Shown here one piece after another: positions 6,583 through 62,028 of a stretch of 64,000 bases of DNA. A program made the position numbers and the translations under genes. Source of the DNA: Mantamonas sphyraenae STR306 (Eukaryota; Protista; CRuMs); contig JAPMXV010000006.1 of assembly GCA_026936335.1 (NCBI GenBank), positions 248,001 through 312,000 of the forward strand, read 5' to 3'. How positions within the stretch are numbered: position 1 is the stretch's first letter; each line of letters starts with the position of its first letter. The notes under the pieces are model-generated. The model saw only the letters and a program-made list of their open reading frames with translations, did no database searches and was not told the origin of the DNA.

Positions 6583-7707
6583 TTACGGCTTGTTTCCGGG
6601 GTACAAGAAGGAAAACGCACGCCAGACACGATCGCCCCAGTAGTGCTCGTTGTGCATGCCTCCGTTGTCGAGGAAGTACGCCAGGTTCTTGCCCAGCTGG
6701 AATCCCAGAGTCTCCATCTGGTTGCGCACACGGATGGTTTGGGCCTCGTCGTCGTTGTCTGGCCCTGCGTTGCCGCTGTCCAGGTACACACGGATGGCCG
6801 GCGTCGCGTGCGCGGGCATCACCGTGTTGAGAAAGTCCTCGTTGTTCCACCAGAAGCTGGAGCTCATGCAGCCCACGCGTGTGACCTGGTGCGGACGTGT
6901 CCACCCAGCGTAGCAGGAAAGCAGGCCGCCCAGGCTCGACCCAATCGAGCCCACGTTTGACGGATCCGTCTTTGCACGCAGCTGTCCCTTGAGTTCAGGC
7001 AGCAGTGTGTCAAACACAAAGTCCAGATACTTGTCCGCGTCACCTCCCGCTCCCACCGAGCTGTCGTACGAGTACGTGTACTCGCTGGTTCGGTTGGCAT
7101 CGTTGTACGGACCAATCACAACCACCTCCTGCATGTCTCCGTTGAGCATGAGACCATCCAACGTCGGCTGGATGCCCCAGCATCCCAGCGGACAGCACGA
7201 AGAGCACTTGATGCCGTTGTAGAGGTTGTTCCCGTCGTGCATCACCAGCGTCGGGTAGCTTTTGTACCCATTCTCGCCAAACGACGGCGGCATGTACACC
7301 GACACGTCGCGAGTGTCGTTCAACGTCGGCGCATACGCACCTTGGTACACACTGATGGAACCCTGGGTCAGGAAGAACCAGGGGTAGACGGTGGCGTCGC
7401 CCTGCTGCACGCGCACGTTTTCTCCGCGCTGCCACACGGTGTCGTTGAGCAGCACCTTGACCAGGAGCTGGCTGCTGCTGTCCTTTACCTGCACCGCCAC
7501 ACTCCATGTGTCCTCTCCACTCGCCGTCATCTCCACACCCTTGCTCCAGCTCAGGTTGCCGCCCTCTCCGCGCAGGAATACACCTGTGTCGGTGCCCACG
7601 TTCTTTGCCAGCGGGTACTTCACCACCACTGTCAGTGTCGCTGCCATACCGCCTGCAACCAGCATGCCCAGCAGCAGCAGCAGCACGACCAGCAACGTTG
7701 TGCGCAT
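6583..7707 (-). CDS. Secreted alpha/beta-hydrolase (esterase family) with N-terminal CBM20-like module
   Basis: Signal peptide MRTTLLVVLLLLLG; FLRGEGGNLSWSKG carbohydrate-binding-like module; YPTLVMHDGNNL, nucleophile GSSLGG, YLDSG, GGMHNEHYW. No introns. Confidence 0.85.
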   Translation of the reverse strand: MRTTLLVVLLLLLGMLVAGGMAATLTVVVKYPLAKNVGTDTGVFLRGEGGNLSWSKGVEMTASGEDTWSVAVQVKDSSSQLLVKVLLNDTVWQRGENVRVQQGDATVYPWFFLTQGSISVYQGAYAPTLNDTRDVSVYMPPSFGENGYKSYPTLVMHDGNNLYNGIKCSSCCPLGCWGIQPTLDGLMLNGDMQEVVVIGPYNDANRTSEYTYSYDSSVGAGGDADKYLDFVFDTLLPELKGQLRAKTDPSNVGSIGSSLGGLLSCYAGWTRPHQVTRVGCMSSSFWWNNEDFLNTVMPAHATPAIRVYLDSGNAGPDNDDEAQTIRVRNQMETLGFQLGKNLAYFLDNGGMHNEHYWGDRVWRAFSFLYPGNKP

Positions 7708-7721
7708 GTTTGTGTGTGGTT

Positions 7722-8903
7722 TCATTGTCGACCCTCGCGCACCTGCATCAGTCCACACACCTGCACGTCGCACGAGCACCTGAACCATCCAACTTGAAAT
7801 GTGGCCACCACCTCTTGACAGCCTGGACAGCACACAGGTGTACCCACCACCTTTCGTTTCCTGCTCGACGACTCCAGTGGCACCGTGATCACCACGTCGT
7901 CCTCCGTCTCTGCAAACTCCACAAACCGAGGCACCACGTGTGTCCATCGACAGCCTCCCTCCCGGCTGCTGCCACTGTCCACCACCCCGCAGTACTCGCC
8001 CAACCCTGCATCCTCATCATCTTCCAGCGACACCCATCGGCAAGCCATTCCCTGCTTGCCGTTGCCCTCGTCTCCGCTGCTGCCACCCTTTCCCTTGTTC
8101 ATTTCCTCTTCCAGTGTCTGCAGATCCTTGTCGTCCCAGGGCAGCTTGAGCGTGGATGACTTTGCCGATTTGCTCTTGCTGCGCGCCTGCATGATGGACA
8201 TGTCTGCATGGTTATGCACCACACGTGACCACGGCGCCAACACGTAATTGCAGTGGGTGCATGTCACAGCGTGTCCTTCTTTGTCCACGTCGTCGTCGTC
8301 GTCGTCCTGGACGCCCAGACGCAACACCAATTCCAGATCGTCTCCTTTGCGCTTGCCTTTGCTGTGGCCGTCCACCCACGTGAGGGATTCCACCATGGCC
8401 TGTCCCAACGCCGCACGTTCCGTGTCGCCGCTGTACACTTCGCCAAACACAGCCAGCTGCCAGGCAAAGGAGGCGTTGGGGTGCACGGCGATGCGGCGTT
8501 GTTTGACCCACGCTGCCGCCTCCTGCATGGACATGTCACGGAAGCGGCAAAGGTAGGCCATGACCACAGAGGCACTCCTGCTGATGCCAGCCACACAGTG
8601 GACGAGCACACGTCCTCCGCCTTGCAGGGCGTCTTCAATCCATTGGCTTTCCGCTTCCAGGTGTGGGTACACTGTGCACCACGGCTCATCCTCGATGTCC
8701 ACCCATTTCCACGTCACCCCCTGTGTCTCTGCAATTGCCTGCGCCTTGTCGGCCAGCAGCTTGCGGTCATGGATGGCCAGCACGTGGGTCAGGTCCAACT
8801 CCTCCCACACCCCTCCGTGTGTGCCTGCCTTCATCGAACCCAAGAACAAAACATCGTCCAAGATGGTGGATGGCCATGCATTGCCAAACTTTGTTACGCT
8901 CAT
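7722..8903 (-). CDS. Dual-specificity phosphatase, DUSP12/Yvh1-like with C-terminal Zn-binding domain
   Basis: VLVHCVAGISRSASVVMAYL active site; C-terminal CTHC...CPGC...RCSC. Confidence 0.8.
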   Translation of the reverse strand: MSVTKFGNAWPSTILDDVLFLGSMKAGTHGGVWEELDLTHVLAIHDRKLLADKAQAIAETQGVTWKWVDIEDEPWCTVYPHLEAESQWIEDALQGGGRVLVHCVAGISRSASVVMAYLCRFRDMSMQEAAAWVKQRRIAVHPNASFAWQLAVFGEVYSGDTERAALGQAMVESLTWVDGHSKGKRKGDDLELVLRLGVQDDDDDDVDKEGHAVTCTHCNYVLAPWSRVVHNHADMSIMQARSKSKSAKSSTLKLPWDDKDLQTLEEEMNKGKGGSSGDEGNGKQGMACRWVSLEDDEDAGLGEYCGVVDSGSSREGGCRWTHVVPRFVEFAETEDDVVITVPLESSSRKRKVVGTPVCCPGCQEVVATFQVGWFRCSCDVQVCGLMQVREGRQ

Positions 8904-48199: not shown

Positions 48200-48828
48200 A
48201 TGAGTTCCAGCGGCCGAAAGACTGCTGTGCAGGAGGACTGGGACAACAGAGAGTATCTGGAGTCGGTGACCATGAACATCATGAAGATCACCGAATTCCT
48301 CAACAAATTTGGTAGGTGACATCCACCGTTTGCATCCCCTGCTTGCCCCAGTCGGTTGTTTTCTCAGTGCCCCGTCCCCGTCCGCCGCCAGCGTCCCACA
48401 TAGGCAGCCTTTACGCACGCACGCAGTCCAAAATGTGTTCCCACCCCACCCCACACGGTCCATTGTCCACCTTTACTTTCCCTCGTTGCCCTCCGCCATC
48501 ATATGTGCATGTGCAGGAGCAGGGAAGGACGCCAGAAGGCCGGCGTCGCGGAAATCCCTCTCTGCCAATGGCGCCGCGCAAGGCCGTTTTTCGTGGTCCA
48601 TGCCGCACCCGTTACCCCATGCACACGTCACTACCCTGCACTAGACACTGACACAGGCTACATCGACATGGTGCGTGTGCATCCGTATGTGTGTGTGTGT
48701 GTGTGCCCCACGCAGACGTGACGACGCGAGGCAAGCTTGGGGAAATCAACGAGAAGCTGACGCGTCTGGAGAGGCAACTGGAGTATGTGGAAGCAGCCTA
48801 CTCGTCGTTGAGCACACTGCCCAAGTAA
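48200..48828 (+). CDS. BRK1: BRICK1/HSPC300, WAVE complex subunit; intron 48312-48715
   Basis: VQEDWDNREYLE..IMKITEFLNKF|D..TRGKLGEINEKLTRLERQLEYVEA. Confidence 0.93.
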
Positions 48829-48907
48829 ACACCCCACCAACCTCATTGTGTGTTTGTGAACCATGTCCATTTCAGTCTGTTGTCATCATCTCATCATCAT
48901 CATCACC

Positions 48908-51098
48908 TCATTCCAGCAGCAGCTCACTCACGGGCATGTGCACAATGTATGTGATCATGGGCACACAGCTGGTGGGATTGAGGAGGAGCACCTTGATGGG
49001 TCCGTTGGCGCCGTTGACATCGATGCTCTCCACGGCAAAGCTCTTCTTGTAGGTGAGTGTCGGCACCAGCGCCGGCAGGAACATGATTGGCTTCTGGATT
49101 TCGTAGAGCTGCTTGTCGTAAGAGAGCACCAGGGGCAGATCGGTGATGCTGCGCTTGCCCGTGTTGGTCACCTGGATGCGCAGCCTGAACAGGGGTCCCA
49201 TCCCCTGCACCTCGGCGTTCATCTTGATGCTCTGTGCGTTGGTGGTGTACAGCGCACCGTGGGTGTCGGAGATGGTTTTCACGTACGCGCGTGCGGTGGA
49301 GTGACGCAGTTTGTACAACTCCTTCTGGGACACACGATGCATATCCACCCCTTGGGCCACCTCTCGTTGTGCCTGCTCCAGGTACACCTGTGTCTTGGCA
49401 GGCACGTTGAGGGGCACATCCTGCTCTGCCGGTGGGCCCTGCCGTCCGCCTTGCGATTGGATGTTTGTCAGACGGGGCAGGAAGCGTACGTCGAGGCCGC
49501 CGTTGTCCAGGGACAAGACAAGCGAGTGTTCCTCACGGCTGTACGTGCCAAACCGCATGCCCATCACCGAGTCCTTGACGTCAAAGGTGGACACGACGTT
49601 GCGTTCGTTGTACACACGCACGCGGTTGTCGTCCGTGGCCACGAGGAGGGCGTGAAACTCGCGTGTGTACGAGTACAACGGCGCAAACGCGGTGATGTTG
49701 TGTTCCAGATGCACACTCCACAACTTGTCCGCCTTCTCCGTGTAGCACTGGATGGTGTTGTCCATGCAACTGACGAAAATCTGCTTGTTGTAGTACACCA
49801 GGCCGTTGGGTTGCGACTCCAGCGTCACACTGTTGCCCATCAGTTCCCCTCGCTTGATCGAGTACACCCGTGCGTCACGACACGCCACCACAATGCGATA
49901 ATCCACTTCAAACTTGCCCGCACATGCAACGTACACCGGCGTGGAGGGCAACTTGACGGACGCCTTGACCCCACTCAGATTCGACGCTGTCACAAGGAGC
50001 ATGCCAGACTCGGTGCCCACCACCAACTGACCCACCGCCTTGTCGCCATCCACATTCTTGTTGACCACCCCCAGGCAGGTCACCACCGTCTGTTGCTGCA
50101 ACGGCATGTCTTTGTACAGCCCCACGTACTCGTCCGCCTCGTCCTCGTCCGTGAAACCCAACAGGTCCATGGAACGTGACGAAAGCACCACGTTGGAATC
50201 CTTCGCCACCTGCAACAGGTCCACTGCATCCGCACGTGTGCGCGACCCATCCTTCAGCGAATCCCACACCTGCACACACACACACACACACGCACACACA
50301 CACGTGTTCCATCCGCGATGGGCGATCCCATGTCAGTTGTACGCACACACATGCACAGCACACATGCGCTGGTGTTTGCCTCATGGTAGACTCTCTGGGG
50401 AACGGCTGCTGCGGCGCCGCGGACGGAGCAAGGCAGCGCGCCAAAAAAACGCCTGATCCGATGCCGCGGCTGCGGGCGGTGAAGTGGATAGGGATGGAGA
50501 GTGGCGTGTGGGAGGGTTGGAGGGATGGCAGCGGTGTGTGTGGCTTGCTTACCTCTTGTTCCTCCTGTGCAATGGGCGTCTCTGGGAGGGAATACTTGAA
50601 GTAGGGCCGGAGGTTGGAGTAGACAAAGACGTGTGCGCCCGAGGCGACGGCAATGACGGGCCTCTCCAGGGCCTCGCCTCGCTTGGATTCCAAATAATAG
50701 CACTTGATGGCAACGGGCACCTCCATGAGGGCATGTTCCGACACAAGACTGGTGCCCTTGAACACCTTGAGCTTGCGATCGAGGGTGGCAACCACCAGCT
50801 TCACGTCGCCGTCCCCTTGCAGGTCAACCAACTCCATACACGGACTGTACGCATGCACCCCAGCCACAGGGTCGTACCATGCATTCAACCATCCTGCCCC
50901 CTTGCCCTTTTGGTCGTGCACCGTGCGTGCAGGCGACTTGCCGGCATGGTTTGATGAGGAGGAGGACGACGACGAGCTACCACCCCCGCTGCTGCTGCTG
51001 CTGCTGCTTCCACTGCTGCTCGATGATGATGATGATGATGACCCCGACGAGGTGATCATGTGTGACTTTTTCTGGCTTCCGCCAAACAACGAGGACAT
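48908..51098 (-). CDS. BBS1: Bardet-Biedl syndrome 1 protein (BBSome); one intron
   Basis: WLNAWYDPVAG, DLQGDGDVKLVVA, VYSNLRPYFKYSLP, GMRFGTYSREE, PPAEQDVPLNVPAKT, VQGMGPLFRL, VHMPVSE. Confidence 0.95.
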
Positions 51099-51121
51099 TT
51101 TCAGTTTGGATTGGATTGGAT

Positions 51122-53668
51122 TCATTCGGGACCAAAGGAGTCATCGCCAGAGAACGAGTCCAGGGTGGACGACAATGCATCGTGTTCTCCCATCCTGGCC
51201 AAAATGGGCGAAAACACTGCACTGCTGTCGTGCTGTTGCTGTTGTTGTTGTTGTTGCGATGCCTGCTGGACCTTGTCCTGTGGCGATGACATCCCTGCAT
51301 CGCGTTCTGCATCCTCTGTGTGTTTGTGTTTGTGTTGCTTGTCCACCCCCTCGTCATCGTCCTCCTCGTCCCCTCCATCGTGACTGTGGGCTGCAAACGG
51401 ATTGTCCGGCTGTGCCCACCGACGTGGAGACCTGCCCATCATGTTGCCCGTCACACTTCCTGCTGCTGCCCCACTGCCAAACAGTCGCATCCGTGTGCTG
51501 GGCGACGAGGTCGTCGTCGTCGTCGTCGCTGCACCGGCCCCTCCTGCCGCTGCTCCAACGCCACCAAACTTGGCTTGCAACGCTGCCAATTGTGCTGCCT
51601 GCTGCTCCCGCTGACGTTCGCGCAGCCTGTCCAGTGTGGCTGTGGCTGGCGATTGTTGCACGTATCCTGTGTCACCGCCTGCAAGCACACCGCCGTTCCC
51701 ATGTCCTCCTTGCTGCTGCTGCTGATCGACTCTACCCCCACGCAACTTTGCCATCTGCATGTGTGCCTGCCACACCTGTCGTTCCGCCTCCATCACCGCC
51801 CGTTCGTCGTCCATCTGCAGTTGCATCTCTGTCAGCGCCGCCTCCTTGCGACGCATCTCTGCGCGTGCCTCTTCCACCGCCTGCATCTGTTCCTCCACAT
51901 ACTCCCTGTCCTGTTCCACCAGGAAGCGGGAGGTGTCTGACACCGCTCGTGCTTCACCGTCATCCTCGTCATACCCTTCACCATCCTCACCACCAAGATC
52001 GCCCTGCCGCCGCCTGCGTGCGTTGGCGTTGCCCTGCACCTGCAACGACAACTGGATGAGCTGCTCCTGTTCGCCCACCACCTTGTGGTACTCTGCCAAC
52101 TTGGCACGCAGCGCACGCACCGTGTCGCTCTCCTCACGCGCTGCCGCCTGTTGCTGCACCGTGGCATTTGCCTCCTCCTCCTCCTCCTCTGCCGCACGCA
52201 ACGCCGCCACCTGCTCCCGCAACAGCTCCAGCTTGGCCTGCATCTCATTCATGATGTCATCACGCACCATTTCAAACGGCATGTCAAACATCGCCTCCTT
52301 CAGCTGGCCCAGCTGCGTGTGTACGTCAAACTCGCTCGCACTTGCCACACTGCCCACAGACAGCACCGACGACGACAGCAACTGATGCTGTTGCTGCTGC
52401 TGCTGTTGCTGTTGCTGTTGCCTCTGTTGCTGGTGTGCATTCAGTGCCTCCTTCATCTCTGCCTGCAACTGCTGCAACGCCTGCTTCAGGTCCACGTTTT
52501 CCTCGCGCAACTCCTCCAGCTGGCCCTCGTACGCTGCCACAATCGATCGTTCAAACTCTCCGCGTGTTGTCGACGTGGAGGACGAGCCCATTCCGCGTCG
52601 TGAACCCGTCGTCGACATGCTGCTGCTGCTGCTGCTGTTCGACTTGAGCTGGTTCAAGATTTCAATGTTCGAACGCGTCTCCCGGTTCTTTTCCGACACC
52701 ATCGATTGCATCTTTTCCTTCAGCTTGTCCATGGCTCGTTCGTTCTTTCGCATCGCGTGTCGGAATTGCGTCTCTCGTCGCACCATTGTCGTGTGCTGCT
52801 TCTTGGCTTCGTCCACCTCCCGTTGCAGCTTTTGCACCTGCCTATGTCGCTTCTCTTCGATTTGCCTGCCATGCCCACGTCCAATGTGTATGTGTGAGGC
52901 TTTGTGATTCCCCTCTCCTCTCTCTCCTCTCTTCCCCGCTGGTCACTCACGTGGCTTTGATTTCCCGCGTCGCCACCTCCTGCTCCAACGCAGCAACGGT
53001 CGCCTTCAGCCGCTCCTGTGGCATAGTGTGGCGTCCATGTGTCAGCGTGTGAGCATCTCAACACACACGAGTGGCCGTGTGCATGCATCCCATGCCACGT
53101 GTGCCTCTCCTTGTGGGCTTGTGTGACCCAACACAACGTACCACCGTGCTGCTCTTGGCGCTCAACTCGCTCTCCAGCCGCTTCACAATGCTCTGTGTCT
53201 CCTCCCATCGTTCCAGATCTTTCTGACGCTGCTGCACCAGTTCATGGACACAGTTGACCACCGCCACCATGTGCTGTGCGCCGTACTGTTCGCCAGCGGC
53301 GTGTCGGAAGGGTTTGCCAAAGCCGAACGCGCCCAGCGTGTTGTTCAGGTACGCCATGCTGTTCGCCAGGTTGGACACATTGGCGTACTCGTCAGACTCC
53401 ACAGAACTGCCACCCTGCGGATACATGTTCTCTTGTTCCGCAAGCGCGTTCGACAGGTCATACTTGCCCTGCGTGCACACGTGCGGCCCCAACCTGTCAG
53501 TTCGCCGGATTCCCGCGCGCCAAAATTACGCCCCCTCGCCCCCCCCCCCTTCCCCTTCAAAACCACCTCCCACACACATACCCCTTTCTTGGCCGTGTCC
53601 ACAAAGCTGGATTGCAGGTACAGCGACAAGTCCGTCTCTTCGGCCTCACCAAACAAGTCGTGGGACAT
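51122..53668 (-). CDS. SSX2IP: SSX2IP/ADIP/Msd1-like centriolar coiled-coil protein; multiple introns
   Basis: NLANSMAYLNNTLGAFGF..VVNCVHELVQQRQKD..ETQFRHAMRKNERAMDKLKEKM matches the ADIP domain. Confidence 0.75.
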
Positions 53669-53728
53669 TCCTGGATGGGGAGGTTTTTCTTTTGGCCGCC
53701 TGACCGCACAACCCTCAGCCTTGCTTGT

Positions 53729-55225
53729 TCACACTGCATCTGGATGCACACGGAGCAACATGCGTTCGAACCGGCGATGGAGTATTCTGTTGGACGTCTG
53801 CTCTGAGGAGGGTTCCAGCATGAGGTTGTGGAGAACCACCCATGTCTTGGTTGCCGTCTCCTTGTCCATGGCTCGCACTGACCTCTCCAGCTTGTCGTGT
53901 GGCCATGTCATCATCACTTGCACACGCATGCGGAGATCGGCGTCGTCTTTGGGTGCCACGGATACCTGGCTCCCCGAGGAGCCAAACCGGAAGTTGTTGA
54001 CGCGTTGCAACTGACGATGGCAGAACAGATCTCTGTGTCCTGGACACATGCCAAGCTTGGAAAGGCTCACCTCATCGTCGTCCAGTTGCTTACCGTTGAA
54101 GGTGAGGCGTTGTTGACCTGCCGGGATGCGTGCGTGGGGATGTTCCTCGATGCGTCGCTTCAGGGTGCCGACGTTGTCCCTCAGGCTGATCTCCACCCAG
54201 AATGACTTGCCATGGAGCAGGTTGATGCACACGGCAAAGTTGGGATGCATGACATCGTCTGCATGCTCCTTTGCCTTTTCCATCCGCGTTTCCAGTTGCT
54301 GGGCAAACAGATCGCCCGTTTCCACGCGTGTCTCCATCCTGTCCAGTCTCTGGGCCACATCCTTGCCCTCAGCCACGAGGGTGTTCACCTCCTGCTCTGT
54401 GCGTTCGACCTGCGCCCGCATCGACAGCATGTGGGACACGTGTGCCCGATCAAACCCGATGTTGCTGTTTCTCTCCAGCTCACGATGGCGGTTGTACACC
54501 TGTATGCGTGTGGCACGGATGGCGTCGTCCAATCGTCGTCTGTCCTGCTGCAGCGCCTCGATCAGCTGCCGCACCTCGCCCGCATCCTCGTCAAAGTTTG
54601 CACGCATGTGTTCCTCCAGGTGATTTGTGTGGAGCATGCTGAGGAGAACCATCAGCACAAATGCACCGTACACACCCACGCCGAAGCGTAGCATCATGGA
54701 CGAGTGCCACGCCTGAACCAGCCTTGCCTCCCCACGCCGAACCGCTCGAAAGCACCAAATCTCCATGCGGCTCATGAGACTCAACGATGCCCAGTAACGT
54801 CGTTCTTTCTCCGCATCGTGCGCGTCTCGTCGCATCTTGAGCTCCTCGTGCACCTGGTGCCTGCTGTTCAGCCATGTGGCCAGCTCCCTGCGCTTTGCAT
54901 CCACCACTTCAATGAGACCATCGGTCCGATGTTGTTCCTCCTCCGTGCAATCATCGTCCACAGCCTGGATGGCCTGCAATGCCTCCAGCTCAGCAACCAC
55001 GTCATCGTACTGGGCCTGCTTCGCTCGCACTTCCGCATCCATCGCCTGAGCCTGATGCTCCAATGACACCATTCGATCCGCGTTCATCTGAGTGTGTTGT
55101 TCAGCCGTGATGATGGTGGCCGGTGGGTCGCACTTTCGTGGCGGTGCCGTCTCCGTTGTCTCTCCACCGCTGCTGCTGCTGCTGGATGCCGACAATGAGC
55201 TCTTTTGGTTGGCAGACAATGTCAT
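53729..55225 (-). CDS. Membrane-anchored coiled-coil protein with ubiquitin-like domain and terminal HPD (partial J-like) motif
   Basis: TM FGVGVYGAFVLMVLLSML; UBL GKSFWVEI..VGTLKRRIEE..IPAGQQRLTFNGKQLDD; ends RRFERMLLRVHPDAV. Confidence 0.7.
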   Translation of the reverse strand: MTLSANQKSSLSASSSSSSGGETTETAPPRKCDPPATIITAEQHTQMNADRMVSLEHQAQAMDAEVRAKQAQYDDVVAELEALQAIQAVDDDCTEEEQHRTDGLIEVVDAKRRELATWLNSRHQVHEELKMRRDAHDAEKERRYWASLSLMSRMEIWCFRAVRRGEARLVQAWHSSMMLRFGVGVYGAFVLMVLLSMLHTNHLEEHMRANFDEDAGEVRQLIEALQQDRRRLDDAIRATRIQVYNRHRELERNSNIGFDRAHVSHMLSMRAQVERTEQEVNTLVAEGKDVAQRLDRMETRVETGDLFAQQLETRMEKAKEHADDVMHPNFAVCINLLHGKSFWVEISLRDNVGTLKRRIEEHPHARIPAGQQRLTFNGKQLDDDEVSLSKLGMCPGHRDLFCHRQLQRVNNFRFGSSGSQVSVAPKDDADLRMRVQVMMTWPHDKLERSVRAMDKETATKTWVVLHNLMLEPSSEQTSNRILHRRFERMLLRVHPDAV

Positions 55226-55435
55226 TGTGTGATGGGATTGTATTTGTGCCGGGAGGTTTCAAGTTGTCGTGGTGGGCGCACGTGTTGCACAGCCCACACA
55301 CCGATTTCGGGGCTTGACGTCATCGCGCCGCATCTGGCTCCTCCGGCTGCGCACGGCAAGTCGGCCCCAGATGCAAAAGTGAACGGCATCATGGTGACCC
55401 CACGAGTAGCACCACGACTCATGTTGATGTTTGCA

Positions 55436-57010
55436 TCAAATGTGCAATTGTGTCCTGACTTCAAGGAAGCGCATGACATCTCGAGCCAGCCGTTCGACGG
55501 CGCCTTCCGCGTCGCCATCCTCCAGTTCCCACACAAAGCCACCAAGGACGGCCCTGCGCAGACTACGTGTGTGCTCATCCTTGTGCTTGCGCAACGCACG
55601 TCCCAAATCCATCCAGATGTGTGTGTGGTCCAGGTTCTCGTAACGGATGCACATCACCCAGCTGCCCACCTGCTGGACTGCACGTGCATAGCGAGCACTG
55701 CTGGCAAGGGGCACCGTGCCGTCTCCTGCGCCGTGAAGGAGCAGCGTGGGTGGCAGCTGGCGTTCGTTGCTGGCCGAGGATGCGTCGGTAGCCAAGATTC
55801 GCAGCACTGTGGTGGGAGACCAGACGCCAAACTCTTCCAACCCATGCATGGTCTCTGTCATGGGACTGATTTCGGCCAAGCCACGCCAGGCCTCGTGTTC
55901 CCTGTGCTCCAGCAGGTGGTAGGGGCCACACATGCCCACAAAGCCTGCGATTTGTCCCACTCGCCACCACTGCTGCTGACAATGCGACAGGGCCAGCAAA
56001 CGCGACCCTGTGCGGTGCACATCACTGTCTCGCACCACATCCTGTCGTTCCATCAGGGCCTCCCAGGCAGCCTCCAACTCTTCGAGTTTGGCGGTGTGGT
56101 GTGCCACCTGATACGGGTGTGGCAGCGATGCATGCTTCTTCAACTGTGCCACATGCTTTTCGTACTGTGCTCGCAGCTCCGTGCGCTCCACAAGCATCTC
56201 CTTGCGCTGTGCTCGGTGCCGTTCTGCCGCAAGCTTGTGTGTGAGCAGCGTACTGACCAGATGGGATCCACTGCTGTGACCCACGAGAAAGACATTGTTG
56301 GGGTCGCCCCCGTAGAGGTGGATGTTCTCAAACGTCCATTGGATGGCCGCGTTCACGTCGTGCAGGATCTCGTGGATGCGTGCCGGGTGCATACAGAACT
56401 GGGGCACCACAAAGAGCATGTGACGACGCCGTACACCCAGTCCCAACTCTGCATACAGCCATTTGTTGCCATTCTTCCAGGCACCCCCCTGCACAAACAC
56501 GAGCACGGGCAACCGCGGATGTTTGCCCGCCCTCGGGTTCTCCATCCATTGTTGCGCCTGCATGGGCACATAGATATCCAGCTTCTGTGTGTTCATATGG
56601 TCCTCGTCAGAAACCCATCGAGGTGCGTCGTAGCTTGGGCTTGGCGCGAATCCCGGACTGTGCGAGGTGGAGGAAGCCGGTTTGCTCGAATTGTCGCCTT
56701 CCGCTTCGCCGTCGTCGTCGTCCTCCTGGCCCATGTCGAAGCGTTGCATGTGTTGGTGCCGCATGTGGTCGCTCAACACGGCGTAGGACACGTTTCGCAC
56801 AATCCCCGTGTGTCTGCTCCATATCCTATACGTGCGCATGGCCCGAACGGAGTTGCGCAAGATCCACACCAACTGGTTCGACGCCTCCCAAGCCACCAGC
56901 GCATACATGCGCAGCCACTGCCACACACGCACCACATGGAAACGCAGGAAGAACCACACAAAGAGCAAGGGCCGGTCGACGCCCAGGCGCCAATGAAGCG
57001 ACGACGGCAT
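55436..57010 (-). CDS. Isoprenylcysteine methylesterase (ICME)-like alpha/beta hydrolase
   Basis: LDIYVP, PVLVFVQGGAW, YGGDPNNVFLVGHSSG, LLHGAGDGTVP. Confidence 0.8.
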   Translation of the reverse strand: MPSSLHWRLGVDRPLLFVWFFLRFHVVRVWQWLRMYALVAWEASNQLVWILRNSVRAMRTYRIWSRHTGIVRNVSYAVLSDHMRHQHMQRFDMGQEDDDDGEAEGDNSSKPASSTSHSPGFAPSPSYDAPRWVSDEDHMNTQKLDIYVPMQAQQWMENPRAGKHPRLPVLVFVQGGAWKNGNKWLYAELGLGVRRRHMLFVVPQFCMHPARIHEILHDVNAAIQWTFENIHLYGGDPNNVFLVGHSSGSHLVSTLLTHKLAAERHRAQRKEMLVERTELRAQYEKHVAQLKKHASLPHPYQVAHHTAKLEELEAAWEALMERQDVVRDSDVHRTGSRLLALSHCQQQWWRVGQIAGFVGMCGPYHLLEHREHEAWRGLAEISPMTETMHGLEEFGVWSPTTVLRILATDASSASNERQLPPTLLLHGAGDGTVPLASSARYARAVQQVGSWVMCIRYENLDHTHIWMDLGRALRKHKDEHTRSLRRAVLGGFVWELEDGDAEGAVERLARDVMRFLEVRTQLHI

Positions 57011-57072
57011 GATGTTTGTGTTGCAGTGTATGTATTGTATTGTGTGTGTGAATGCAATGCAATGTTGAAGGA

Positions 57073-58049
57073 TCAGCCCTCCTTGGGGGTGGTGAGTTCA
57101 GAGAGGTGATCAAAGAGGATGACACTGTCCGGGATGGACCCCTTGAACGAGGGTGCATCGGGATGGTGAAAGTTCAGGAGGTCCTGTGCAACGCCACGAT
57201 AGGCCACAAAGGGAAGGTGACGGAAGAGGTGGGCAGTCACCAATTCACTGCACTCCACATGGGCCACAGGGTCGATCTGACGCACAATCGACGCACGGCC
57301 CACGGTTGTGTCACAGTACAATGATCGCTGTGGCGGCGCAGGATGGGTGAGTGGCATGTGGGTGTAAGCAGACGCTGTGTTGGTGTTGGGAGTGGTCGCC
57401 TGTGGAACCCTCCCCCCCCTCTTTCAGCACACTTACGTAGCTGGGGATGCCTGCGCCGCGTGAGAACAGTCCCGCGTTGCGAAAGAGGGCGTGCAGCTGG
57501 GCCTGCTGGGCGTCGTCGTCGCATTGTGTGATGAGATAGACGTTGCAGGAGGCAATGAGTTGATATACAATGTTGAGCACGTCCTCATCGAGCTCAAACT
57601 CTCCGTTGGAGTTGTTTCGCACCAGGAGCAGCTGCAGCAGAGGAGGCCTGGATGTGAGTTGCCACTTCCCCACGTGGTAGCGTGCACAGACACACACACG
57701 CACACACACACACTGAGTGTGTGACCGATACTCCATCCCACTCACATTGTTGGTGGTCAGCGTCACACGCGAGCGTTGTGAGCTGGAAACAAGGCGTGCC
57801 AACAGGGGGCCGGACGAGGCCAGCGAGGCAGCAGCGGAAGACGAAGCACCGGAGCCTGCCTCACGCCCTCCACGTCCCCCTGCGTTGGGGGTGGCCAATG
57901 CACCGCCACGTGAGGCGTTGTTGCGTCCACCTCGGCGTCCAGGTCGCTGTGGGGCAGGACACACAGGTGGAGGGAAAATGGGGGTTTGCGGTGAGTTTTC
58001 TCCTCGTGGTCGACCACACACACACACATTCACACATGCACACACGTTA

Positions 58050-58098
<49 letters not shown>

Positions 58099-58406
58099 AA
58101 CACCACATCCGGGTGGGTGAGGGAATGGGGTTGTGAAGAACATACACGACGGCGTGCAAAGAAGAGGCGATGTACAAGGAAGCCCAGGCCGAGGACAGAG
58201 GCAACGAGCCAAAACAGGCGCTTGACCATGGCGATTTCGTTGTTCTGACGTGCCAGAACACCCATGGAGGCACGTTTGACTGCCGGATCGGTGCCGGCAA
58301 AGAAGGCAGCCGACTCCACAGGGTCCAACACAATCATGAGCCATCGAGGCACATGCTCACGCACTGTGTGGGCCAATGCCAGCAGTTGCTGGGTTGTGGA
58401 CGACAT
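57073..58406 (-). CDS. PEX22: Plant-type peroxin Pex22; 3 introns
   Basis: N-terminal TM; NVYLITQCDDDAQQAQLHALFRNAGLFS..RSLYCDTTVGRASIVRQIDPVAHVE resembles the plant PEX22 C domain. Confidence 0.7.
58015..58095. repeat. (CA)n microsatellite in PEX22 intron
   Basis: Long, near-uninterrupted CA run. Similar intronic tracts lie at ~3294-3330, 29743-29769, 45473-45493 and 50273-50303. Confidence 0.9.
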
Positions 58407-58490
58407 CTCTCTCACACACTCTCTCCCTGCTGCAAACAGGCACAAGAAGAGATGGATTGGAGGCAACTGTGCACACCTACAGCTGTAGCT

Positions 58491-59395
58491 CTATTGCTTC
58501 GATCCATCCACACTGTTGCTGGTCACGTTCACCGTCGTCACGCCTGTCTGGTCGTCGGAAGCCCGCGTGGTGTCGTCGACGGACGTGGAGGAAGCCTGCT
58601 GTGGCTTCTCCTCCTCTGCCTGTTCCTCCTTTCCTTCCTCACGCCCATGCCTATCCTTGTGGCGTCGTGGACTATGATGACGATGATGTCGATGCCGCCT
58701 GCTGCTGCTGGTGGTGGTGGTGCTTCTGTGATGATGATGGTGGTGCTCTTTCCTCCTTCGCTTCTTGCTATGTCGCCTGCGCTTGCCTTCACTCTCGCTG
58801 CCACTACTGTTGCTGTCGACACTGTCTCCTCCTTCTCCATTTCCGTCATGGTGATCATCATCTGTGCGACTGCGCTTTCGTTCTTCCCTCTTTCGCCTCC
58901 TGCGTTCCCTTCGTTCTCGTCTCCTCTCCTTCCTCGCCCTCCTTCGCGCCCTTCGTTCCTCCTTGCTCTCCTTCCGCTCCCGAGCCTCCTCGGCAGCCTT
59001 GTACGCTGCCAGTGCGGCCATGCTCACTTCTCCGCCCCCTTCCTCGTCCGACGACGATTCCGACGACGTCGAGCTCACGTCGCACTCGTCTTCCGGCGCA
59101 AGCGGCGTCAGCCGGATGTGGTTTCGGCACTCGTGCGTCAGATGTCCGACTGTCCCCATCCCCCCCCCCCCCAAGCATACAAACACACACGTGTGTGATC
59201 ACAAGATGTGTGCATGTGTGTGAGTGAGTGTGAGTGAGTGTGAGTGTGCCTGTGTGAGGGAAGGTCTCCCAGTTTCCGCCTCCTGTGTGGTCACTCACAG
59301 CCATTGCAGCGTCTGCACGTGCCCTTCCGTGCATCCTCCTCCTTGACAGCCACACCCAGGTTTCCCTTGAGCACAGCATTGGCTGGGGTGGTCAT
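58491..59395 (-). CDS. Zinc-knuckle SR-like protein (CXIP4/SREK1IP1-like); one intron
   Basis: ARKGTCRRCNG|VGHLTHECRNHI CCHC knuckle followed by an R/K/S/H-rich low-complexity tail. Confidence 0.75.
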
Positions 59396-59471
59396 GGTTG
59401 GGTTGGGTTGGGTGGGTTGGGTGCAGCATTTCATTTTTGGCGCATTGGCACATTTGGCACACACACCTGAA

Positions 59472-60770
59472 TCAATCATGCTTGGCCTTCTTGGGTGTCT
59501 TCTTGTTTGTAGCTTTGCTCTTGCTTGTCTTTCCCTCCTGCTTGTCGCCTTTGCTGTCCTTGAGGCCGCTGGCTTCGGCAGCCGTCTTTGCCGGCACCTT
59601 GCCCGTGCGCACAGGCTTCTTCTGCAGTCCCATGATGCGCAGAAGCATGCGTGCAATCTCGGCGCCCCACATAACGTTGAGGAGATTGAGGAAAATGGCG
59701 GCGGCAATGCAGATGGAGGCCTGCAGCGGGGTGGTCTCCAGGTGAGCGATCAGCACAGCGAGCAAACGCGGCATCGCAAAGATGCCGTAGTACCAGCGCA
59801 CCACAAAGAACATGGTGGCAAACAACAGGTTGTTCAACATGGTCAGCACACTGGCGTCGCTGATGCCAAGTTGCTTGAACAGCAGGCGCAGGTCAAGGAA
59901 CACGGTGGACAGCTCGTACGTCAGGAAGCGGATGCCCCACGCCTGCATAAACGGCGTCAGCAGGGAGCCAAACGCAAGGCTTGCAGCAATCGAATGCAGC
60001 AGATATGGCACCTGTGAGTCATCCACGCGCACATAGCACCGGTCCGCACGTGTGTCAGGCTCTGTGTGTGTGTGTACAGGAGGAATCTGGGGGCGCGGAG
60101 GGGAAATAGGAAAAGCACTCTCAACACGTACGCCAAACACGTCGAAATGCAGGCAGCACATGACAAAGTCAAAGGAGAAAAACGCCACAGTGATGCAAAT
60201 GACAAAGATGGCACGGTGACTCGTGCCCAGGATGGGGTCTATGTTGTGTGTGTGTGAAGTGTGAAGTGTGTGTCAGCGCTTGCCCGTTGCTCTTGGGTGC
60301 TCCCTCATTGGACCACACACGTACCCATGCTGCGCTCGGGTTCGGCCCACAGCAAGGCCAGGGCACTGAAGCCAACGAGGGAGGAGTGGACAATGGCAGG
60401 GATGTTGACATCCCACAGCACACGGTCCTTCTGGCGGGTCAGGCCTGCGTAGGATCGCGACAGCAGTGGCGACAGCAGACCCGAAGCCAGGTAGATCAAC
60501 CAGAACACCACATGCCAACCAGCAAGCACCCTGTCATTGAAATGGTGTGATTGTGTCAGGTGGTGAAAAGCAGAGGGGTGGTGATGGAGGGGGGCCAACT
60601 CACTTGACGTATCCGTGCTCGGCCACCAAGGCTGCTCCCATGTCGAGGTAGGGCAGTACAAGGTCCGACCATTGTTGCAAGTACGGGGACACCATTGGCT
60701 CAACGGGGTCCAGCAGAGTGAGCCGGAACTGCGACATCTGGTCCAGAGGCAAGCCCTTCAGAAACTCCAT
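59472..60770 (-). CDS. TLC-domain membrane protein (TMEM56/TLCD4-like); multiple introns
   Basis: WDVNIPAIVHS, YLLH, YELSTVFLDLR, FFVVRW, LNVMW; C-terminal KAKHD ER-retrieval signal. Confidence 0.8.
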
Positions 60771-60984
60771 CCTGTGAATTTTCGCTGCATGCCACTGCGC
60801 ATGGCACATCACATGCACCACATGGCGTCACATGGCGTCGTGCATGATGCGTGGGATGATGACGCAAGATATCCCTCCATGGCGGCTCCATGCGCCATCG
60901 CATCCAGCAAGGTTCAAACAAACACCACAGCCACACACAGCATCCCCCACCACCACCACACACACACACACACACATCCGCGCC

Positions 60985-62028
60985 ATGGACAGCATCACAC
61001 CTGTGAAGCTTGCAAGCACCTATTCACCACCGGCGGTGTACTTGATGTACCAGCGCGGCACCCAGAAGCGTGTACTTCGCATGCGATTGGACACACAGGC
61101 CTTGGGTCGCAAGATGCCCTCTGAGATTGCCTCTGAACTGCGCATGGAACACTTTGAACAGTTGCGTGGTGTCACTCTGAGTCAGGTGTGTTCTTCCCCT
61201 GTGTTGCCCGGTGGAACACCACGCTCCCCACGTCCACACCACGTGTCCCCAGGCACACCAACCGCCTCGAATGCCTTTTCCAAACGCATTGTAAACATTT
61301 GCTGTGCCCTTGCCTGTGCATGACCTGCTGTGGTACGGCAGAGGGGCGTTTTGGGAGCTTCCACACGTTCGCCCGCCCTTTTCACACGAAATCTCACCCT
61401 TCCTACGCGACACGACGACGCGGCGTGGCACGGATGACCCGTTGCACTGCATGCACAGTTGACAAACATGATTGCCAAGGTGTTGAACCAGCAGTCAAAC
61501 ACAGGAAGCCAGTCTCCGGCTCGTGGGAGCACCAGCAGCAGAGCAGCCGACTGGTCGCAGGGCTGGAACGTACGAGGAGGCACGGGATCAGCCTCAAGCA
61601 CGGGCTCAGGCACAGGCTCAGGAGGGTACACACGGACGCAGTATGGCCAGCGTGGGGAATCAGACAAGATGGGCACGGACGGCGACGAGGTGGAGGACGA
61701 AGAGGAGGAAGAAGACTACGGCGGGTTCTTTGGCGGCCAAACAGACTTTATGGCAACGCGCTCGAAGGAGCTGGAGGATCAGTTGGCGGCAAAGAGGGAA
61801 GAGAGGGTGGAGGAGGAAAAGAGGAAGATGGCAGACAGCCTGCGCAAGTACGACGGTGTGAATCTGAACAAAGTGAGCGAAGAGGAGCTGGAAAAGGCCA
61901 AACGGGACATGGACGTGCTTTTCTACCACAACCAGCTCAAACCAGGCGACGAAGGATACGAGTATGACAAGCGGGTGGACTTTGGCGAGCCGACAGAGGA
62001 GAATGATTGGGACAAGTTTGACTTCTGA
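60985..62028 (+). CDS. CEP19: Centrosomal protein 19; one intron
   Basis: PVKLASTYSPPAVYLMY N-terminus; NLNKVSEEELEKAKRDMDVLFYHNQLKPGDEGYEYDKRVDF..DWD C-terminus. Confidence 0.85.

Follow-up and report, generated by a model that had tools for sequence, protein, structure and literature searches.

Seven genes lie head to tail on the minus strand of a 64,000-nt stretch of the Mantamonas sphyraenae STR306 genome (contig JAPMXV010000006.1, positions 248,001 to 312,000), which is referred to here as the window and in which positions are counted from its first letter. From position 60770 down to 48908 the array consists of a TLC-domain gene, a CXIP4-like gene, a PEX22-like gene, an ICME-like gene, a ubiquitin-like (UBL) gene, SSX2IP and BBS1. 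By three-frame translation and peptide look-up, every coordinate of the original prediction, which had described the array as operon-like, was reproduced, as was every stop-to-ATG gap (exactly 76, 84, 62, 210, 60 and 23 nt along the array). The 23-nt spacer between SSX2IP and BBS1 (51099-51121) was confirmed to contain zero AG dinucleotides, and the claim that 23 nt is too short for a classical 3' untranslated region (UTR), a poly(A) site and a promoter side by side is correct. Consecutive spacers between 46.5 and 62.1 kb of the window, regardless of orientation, measure 93, 79, 23, 60, 210, 62, 84, 76, 214 and 105 nt, and Rfam and tRNA scans of the 64-kb window gave no matches. The features of the locus are listed in Table 1.

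Spliced genes were searched against databases exon by exon, while joined models were used only for ATG counts and for internal-stop checks. The labels BBS1, SSX2IP, TLC domain and ubiquitin domain are solid on the basis of these profile matches. The two exons of BBS1 matched PF14779 with E-values of 2.2e-40 and 8.6e-30, GAE_BBS1 (PF23304) was matched with an E-value of 4.7e-30, and 92 homologues of 580-670 aa were found with identities of up to 44%; a word search with BBS1 exon 2 returned no Mantamonas relative, the best match being 44% identical. Exon 2 of SSX2IP aligned with positions 2-74 of the ADIP profile PF11559 (50.5 bits against a cut-off of 34.3, E=3e-13) and exon 4 with positions 99-150 (23.1 bits, E=8.5e-5). 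The introns of this gene bear GTRNGY, CTGAC and AG signals and its joined model has no internal stop; the exon model of the TLC gene, obtained with a custom gene finder, likewise has 0 internal stops. The remaining names given in the original prediction fared less well. ICME could be shown only to be an alpha/beta hydrolase, with matches to generic families of that fold, and its label is putative; the PEX22 label is weak, with a PF22978 score of 23.8 bits, under the Pfam cut-off of 27 and confined to the last exon; and the CXIP4-like gene had no Pfam match. The latter has a C-x2-C-x4-H-x4-C knuckle that spans its intron and becomes visible once the intron is removed, and it contains further in-frame ATGs at 59434 and 59479. 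A splice fusion of SSX2IP with BBS1 was considered and rejected: there is no consensus donor before the SSX2IP stop and no AG in the spacer, and even a lenient gene finder left the two genes unjoined.

Table 1. Genes, spacers and candidate signal of the seven-gene array and its flanks. For minus-strand genes the higher coordinate is the start of the ATG and the lower coordinate the end of the stop codon.
Feature	Position	Strand	Description
BRK1/HSPC300 gene	48200..48828	+	2 exons: 48200-48311, 48716-48828; phmmer match to PDB Brk1 3pp5_A
Spacer BBS1/BRK1, convergent	48829..48907	.	79 nt stop to stop; 3' boundary of array
BBS1 gene	48908..51098	-	2 exons: 50553-51098, 48908-50269; intron 50270-50552; GAATGA fused to stop
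Spacer SSX2IP to BBS1	51099..51121	-	23 nt; C/A-rich; without AG; candidate BBS1 5' leader
AATGAA fused to SSX2IP stop	51121..51126 (TGA at 51122-51124)	-	candidate poly(A) signal
SSX2IP/ADIP gene	51122..53668	-	4 exons: 53582-53668, 53142-53468, 52951-53015, 51122-52865; coding sequence ~2,223 nt
Spacer UBL to SSX2IP	53669..53728	-	60 nt; GAATGT overlapping SSX2IP ATG
UBL gene	53729..55225	-	single exon, 498 aa; coiled coil, membrane segment, ubiquitin-like domain; Pfam ubiquitin E=1.1e-10
Spacer ICME to UBL	55226..55435	-	210 nt; scans: 0 tRNA, 0 Rfam RNA
ICME-like gene	55436..57010	-	single exon, 524 aa; Pfam BD-FAE, COesterase, Abhydrolase_3
Spacer PEX22 to ICME	57011..57072	-	62 nt; C/A-rich; sense strand without AATGA-like motif
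PEX22-like gene	57073..58406	-	at least 3 exons; N-terminal hydrophobic membrane anchor; weak match to HAD_Pex22 PF22978
Spacer CXIP4-like to PEX22	58407..58490	-	84 nt; without AATGA-like motif
CXIP4-like gene	58491..59395	-	two exons; CCHC zinc knuckle; Arg/Glu/Ser-rich tail; putative label
Spacer TLC to CXIP4-like	59396..59471	-	76 nt; AATGAA at 59430-59435, then C/A-rich tract reaching ATG
TLC-domain gene	59472..60770	-	~4 exons: 60604-60770, 60325-60530, 60132-60238, 59472-60011; Pfam TRAM_LAG1_CLN8 E=5e-14
Spacer TLC/CEP19-like, divergent	60771..60984	.	214 nt; 5' boundary of array
CEP19-like gene	60985..62028	+	~2 exons; Pfam CEP19 E=1.9e-18

The published assembly of M. sphyraenae comprises 25.06 Mb (25,061,354 bases) in 78 contigs with a GC content of 59.19%, and holds 9,416 genes with a mean length of 2,282 bp, described as 'mostly mono-exonic', together with 12% repeats (PMC10492846). 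From these figures we computed that genes cover 85.7% of the genome and that neighbouring genes lie on average 379 bp apart, repeats being counted in this distance; the words 'intergenic', 'gene density', 'UTR' and 'polycistron' do not occur in the genome paper (PMC10492846). Statistics on gene order were taken from 264 kb of the same contig (the window plus 200 kb, ~100 genes), on which genes were called with a codon-bias open reading frame (ORF) caller and a small splice-aware dynamic-programming finder. The custom calls gave a genic span of 82-84% and one gene per 2.5-3.0 kb, near the published figures. Each version of the gene caller errs in its own way: the plain ORF caller split multi-exon genes, the lenient splice-aware finder fused neighbours through chance introns (for example SSX2IP, UBL and ICME) and the strict one split real genes. 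Ranges over the versions are therefore reported, and weight was placed on convergent gaps, which are independent of start-codon and intron calls, and on junctions anchored by domains. Extending genes to their longest ORF overshoots in GC-rich DNA and produces negative divergent gaps. Introns numbered ~0.8-1.3 per gene in the custom calls and are commoner than 'mostly mono-exonic' suggests (PMC10492846). They show a strong GTRNGY consensus at the 5' end and a CTGAC branch-like motif followed by the next AG (e.g. 50270-50552, 57632-58145 and 53469-53581), and many contain (GT)n or (CA)n runs.

Gene orientation around the window is random, with same-strand neighbours making up 0.43-0.49 of pairs. 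For 100 randomly oriented genes the probability that the longest run reaches at least seven is ~0.5, and ~74 such runs are expected in 9,416 genes; outside the array, same-strand runs in the window are of 1-3 genes. Short spacers were observed in all three orientations. The median convergent spacer was 81 nt and 15 of the 27 did not exceed 100 nt, 17 of the 46 same-strand spacers were at or below 100 nt (3-99 nt), and divergent spacers had a median of ~416 nt, with five at 68-87 nt. At another same-strand junction of the window, a DSPc phosphatase gene (7722-8834, minus strand) is followed by a putative esterase gene (6583-7707, minus strand) across a 14-nt spacer without AG (7708-7721), which is tighter than the 23 nt between SSX2IP and BBS1; the esterase has a signal-peptide-like start. 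The stop of a coilin-like gene lies 25 nt from the start of Vps36 (spacer 2752-2776), and this start is anchored by the N-terminal Vps36 domain, which aligns from residue 13. At ~151,690-151,693 of the contig the stop codons of a convergent pair overlap by 4 nt (gap -4). Other convergent pairs are separated by 11-12 nt, and their 3' ends must therefore overlap.

Because runs of seven are expected by chance and short gaps are typical of the genome, neither the length of the run nor its tight spacing distinguishes the array from its surroundings. Tight packing is a property of the whole genome and not of this locus, the operon finding does not hold, and the seven genes are most likely an ordinary stretch of an extremely gene-dense genome.

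A candidate 3'-end signal was found by ranking all 4,096 hexamers at -6 to +60 of the stop codons of 100 genes. AATGAA came top, occurring in 18 of the 100 genes against 0.51 expected (p ~1e-22), with 0 occurrences in the 280 nt of coding sequence (CDS) before the same stops, while AATAAA was present in 0/100. The stop codon is TGA in 78 of these genes. The most enriched 5-mer in the 60 nt after stops was GAATG (22/93 genes against 2.9 expected), and its enrichment is positional and strand-specific. It is also seen in convergent pairs, where no start codon follows, and the signal therefore does not derive from start codons. AATGAA is fused to the stop of SSX2IP and to that of the DSPc gene (7721-7726) and lies 36 nt past the TLC stop (59430-59435); GAATGA is fused to the BBS1 stop (48907-48912). 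AATGAA is thus a candidate for the main poly(A) signal of the organism.

In humans AAUGAA is a rare variant of the canonical AAUAAA. The Mantamonas hexamer resembles that signal in that it differs from AAUAAA by a single base, is sense-strand-specific and clusters within 60 nt after stops; its distinctive points are that, among recognisable forms, AATGAA seems to predominate, and that it frequently includes a TGA stop (A-A-TGA-A). Cleavage takes place 10-30 nt past the signal in other eukaryotes, and at such a distance the SSX2IP mRNA would end at ~51111 to ~51091, that is, at the BBS1 start codon. In the spacer between PEX22 and ICME, the reverse complement of the 3'-end motif family was seen at 57038-57060 (CATTGCATTGCATTC on the sense strand), with GAATG-type motifs facing the opposite way.

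The region from -40 to -1 before ATGs is C/A-rich and G/T-poor, with a T fraction of 0.15-0.18, and this composition is equal in same-strand pairs and in divergent pairs, whose genes are not preceded by the end of another gene. Short divergent spacers are GT-rich, then have a GC-rich core and then become CA-rich, and they read as two mirrored leaders of ~25-30 nt each. With all genes pooled, the 10-nt bins closest to the start codon, three in number, held 6, 7 and 4 out-of-frame ATGs, compared with ~12 per bin further upstream. Taken together, the leader composition, the mirrored divergent spacers and this scarcity of ATGs just before start codons suggest that capped 5' ends lie no more than ~30-40 nt from each ATG. 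A search for CCAAT and initiator-like patterns before ATGs showed no positional peak.

The explanation which we consider somewhat more probable than all others combined is that each gene forms a monocistronic unit of its own, adjoining or slightly overlapping the next, and that the promoter elements of the downstream gene lie inside the 3' end of the upstream gene. This is essentially one of the two options raised in the original prediction, namely promoters buried in the upstream gene genome-wide. Each gene would make its own capped, polyadenylated mRNA, with transcription starting ~30-40 nt or less from the ATG, inside the C/A-rich tract or a little upstream of it. The mRNA of the upstream gene would end a few tens of nt after a signal at or just past its stop (AATGAA where recognisable). 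Neighbouring units would be contiguous or share at most a few tens of nt, and the core promoter of the downstream gene would occupy the final codons or the 3' end of the gene before it. At the SSX2IP-BBS1 junction, the AATGAA fused to the SSX2IP TGA would serve as the signal of the one gene and the 23-nt spacer, which resembles a leader, would belong to the other. The published poly(A)+ transcriptome comprises 9,255 contigs with a mean of 2,218 nt for 9,416 genes (PMC10492846); with roughly one contig per gene and a length near the mean gene length, multi-gene contigs cannot be the rule.

Several observations weigh against this explanation. The transcriptome authors retained a single ORF per contig (PMC10492846), which makes the contig statistics indirect. 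The divergent median of ~416 nt exceeds the same-strand mode, and same-strand downstream genes therefore lack room for a promoter of equal size outside the upstream gene. Only 18-27% of genes have AATGAA or AATGA, and three of the six internal spacers of the array (CXIP4-like to PEX22, PEX22 to ICME and ICME to UBL) contain no AATGA-like motif. Among k-mers enriched upstream of ATGs only C/A-rich words were found, with no discrete promoter, initiator or TATA-like motif. The custom gene calls confuse some introns with spacers and mischoose some start codons. Finally, it is from the DNA sequence only that we infer where transcription starts and poly(A) sites lie and that AATGAA acts as a poly(A) signal.

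The 23-nt figure depends on which BBS1 start codon is used. In-frame ATGs are present at 51125, where the codon overlaps the SSX2IP TGA as ATGA, at 51098 and at 51059, with none further 3' before the conserved part of the protein; that part begins only at 50891, and homology is therefore unable to choose among them. Were translation to begin at 51059, the gap to SSX2IP would be 62 nt, like those of neighbouring spacers (60, 62, 76 and 84 nt), and 23 nt would be an artefact of start choice. The segment from 51098 to 51059 is not conserved, and the ATG at 51098 stands in a GAAAATG context resembling the 3'-end motif family, both of which favour the later start. Against it, 51098 would be the first AUG if transcription began within the C/A-rich spacer, and the window contains two junctions, anchored by domain alignments, at which the gap is only 14 or 25 nt. 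We regard such an artefact as possible but doubtful, and the signals of the two genes must overlap even with 62 nt between them. A second alternative, also raised in the original prediction, is that mature mRNAs are bi- or polycistronic and are made without trans-splicing, SSX2IP and BBS1 and perhaps further genes sharing one capped, polyadenylated transcript. The upstream ORFs of the array are long and rich in ATGs (711-2,223 nt with 10-49 ATGs, more than in shuffled sequence): the SSX2IP CDS has 49 ATGs against 29.8 in shuffles, and the other upstream ORFs, of 711-1,575 nt, have 10-40. Leaky scanning therefore cannot reach the next ORF, and the downstream ORF would have to be translated by another route, such as termination-reinitiation at the ATGA at 51122-51125. 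That gaps of 23, 14 and 25 nt cannot hold classical signals side by side, that the ATG at 51125 overlaps the SSX2IP stop, that three internal spacers are without an AATGA-like motif and that neighbours on one strand tend to be spaced more closely than divergent neighbours all speak for such transcripts, and polycistronic mRNAs are indeed documented in green algae (PMC7896298), as had been claimed. The Mantamonas loci are like the green-algal ones in having same-strand ORFs tens of nt apart, with stop and start sometimes overlapping, and, in all probability, no trans-splicing (PMC7896298; PMC11291117). The green-algal ORF 1, however, has a median length of 291-357 nt, a weak Kozak context and few ATGs, and the inter-ORF distance is far below the 2.5-3.4 kb between ordinary colinear genes (PMC11291117). 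Neither a short ORF 1, nor ATG depletion upstream of ORF 2, nor an unusually short inter-ORF gap was found here; the upstream ORFs are long and ATG-rich, and their spacing is the ordinary spacing of the genome. Random orientation and equally short convergent spacers also argue against polycistrons, as do the AATGAA fused to the SSX2IP stop and the AATGAA between TLC and the next gene, a published transcriptome of about one contig per gene, and a leader composition (in divergent genes too) and an ATG depletion (all genes pooled) that point to scanning from near each ATG. The polycistronic option therefore gained no support, and we judge it unlikely. Slightly less likely again is that the tightest same-strand pairs (SSX2IP-BBS1 with 23 nt or the ATGA overlap, DSPc-esterase with 14 nt and coilin-like-Vps36 with 25 nt) are genuine bicistronic mRNAs; if they were, translation in a CRuMs protist would have to resume by reinitiation, or begin internally, downstream of ORFs 300-740 codons long, a mode unlike green-algal polycistrony.

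Kinetoplastid units and nematode operons consist of long directional clusters or undergo SL2-type processing, and they have both a pyrimidine tract and an AG acceptor. Polycistronic precursors resolved in this way by spliced-leader (SL) trans-splicing would account for the same-strand arrangement and the short gaps of the array, and the likeness consists in several unrelated genes lying head to tail on one strand. Here, in contrast, orientation is random without long directional clusters, the shortest spacers (23 and 14 nt) are without AG, the leaders are so poor in T (0.15-0.18) that they offer no polypyrimidine tract, and the window is without an Rfam match. Neither long directional gene clusters nor ORFs each preceded by a pyrimidine tract and an AG acceptor were found, no literature linking spliced leaders with CRuMs was found, and we consider this explanation extremely improbable. 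A selected cluster of cilium genes, retained for co-regulation, is the remaining alternative. CEP19-like, SSX2IP and BBS1 place three cilium or centriole genes within ~13 kb, probably by chance. The pathway link on which the original prediction drew is supported, in that the BBSome of human cells is helped into cilia by SSX2IP (PMC3923641), and the CEP19-like gene lies only 214 nt from the start of the array. The adjacency itself is not shared: in three other eukaryotic lineages, the long contigs that hold BBS1 showed no ADIP-domain neighbour less than 6 kb away from it, and the five genes of the array other than SSX2IP and BBS1 are functionally unrelated to cilia. On a rough guess that 5-10% of the genes of a flagellate are ciliary, ~2% of nine-gene stretches would by chance hold three such genes, or ~20 stretches per genome. 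A selected cluster is accordingly held to be quite improbable, and the adjacency of SSX2IP and BBS1 is treated as a coincidence.

Other features were noted on the contig. BRK1/HSPC300, a subunit of the SCAR/WAVE complex, gave phmmer matches to 3pp5_A with E-values of 2.3e-9 (exon 1) and 2.9e-6 (exon 2) and was scored weakly by the custom gene finder; such small genes are easily missed in annotation. At ~72,927-72,937 of the contig, two giant plus-strand ORFs of ~4,560 and ~2,050 codons lie in different frames 5 nt apart (TGA, 5 nt, ATG); they may represent separate genes, a single gene disrupted by a frameshift or an assembly error, or a case of recoding. A 214-codon gene occurs as two inverted copies ~11 kb apart (~177,603-178,247, plus strand, and 188,686-189,330, minus strand, of the contig), with near-identical upstream sequences of 110 nt.

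The closest parallels to abutting monocistronic units are found in compacted genomes. Giardia has very short UTRs, and Williams et al. (2005) reportedly described abutting or overlapping transcription units in the compacted genomes of microsporidia and nucleomorphs; phrases from the title of that work recur in PMC3629993 and in other papers. Mantamonas resembles microsporidia, nucleomorphs and Giardia in its spacers of tens of nt in all three orientations, in candidate 3'-end signals at or near the stop and in probable leaders some tens of nt long; with such spacing, the signals of a gene have to lie inside the adjacent one. Unlike these parasites and nucleomorphs, it is a free-living heterotroph with a genome of 25 Mb, 59% GC, ~9,400 genes and many introns, and the overlap of its transcripts is a deduction; its candidate signal, AATGAA, also differs from the motifs of Giardia and Trichomonas.

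These results suggest that gene packing in a free-living member of a deep eukaryotic branch (CRuMs) is about as dense as in some reduced parasites: spacers of 14-90 nt occur whatever the orientation, a likely poly(A) signal is incorporated in stop codons, and leaders are perhaps ~30 nt long. If this were borne out by RNA mapping, M. sphyraenae would provide a non-parasitic model for promoters, poly(A) sites and coding sequence that share bases. It would also allow better annotation of a reference genome (start codons, UTRs and falsely fused or split genes) and would show how little flanking DNA expression constructs need.

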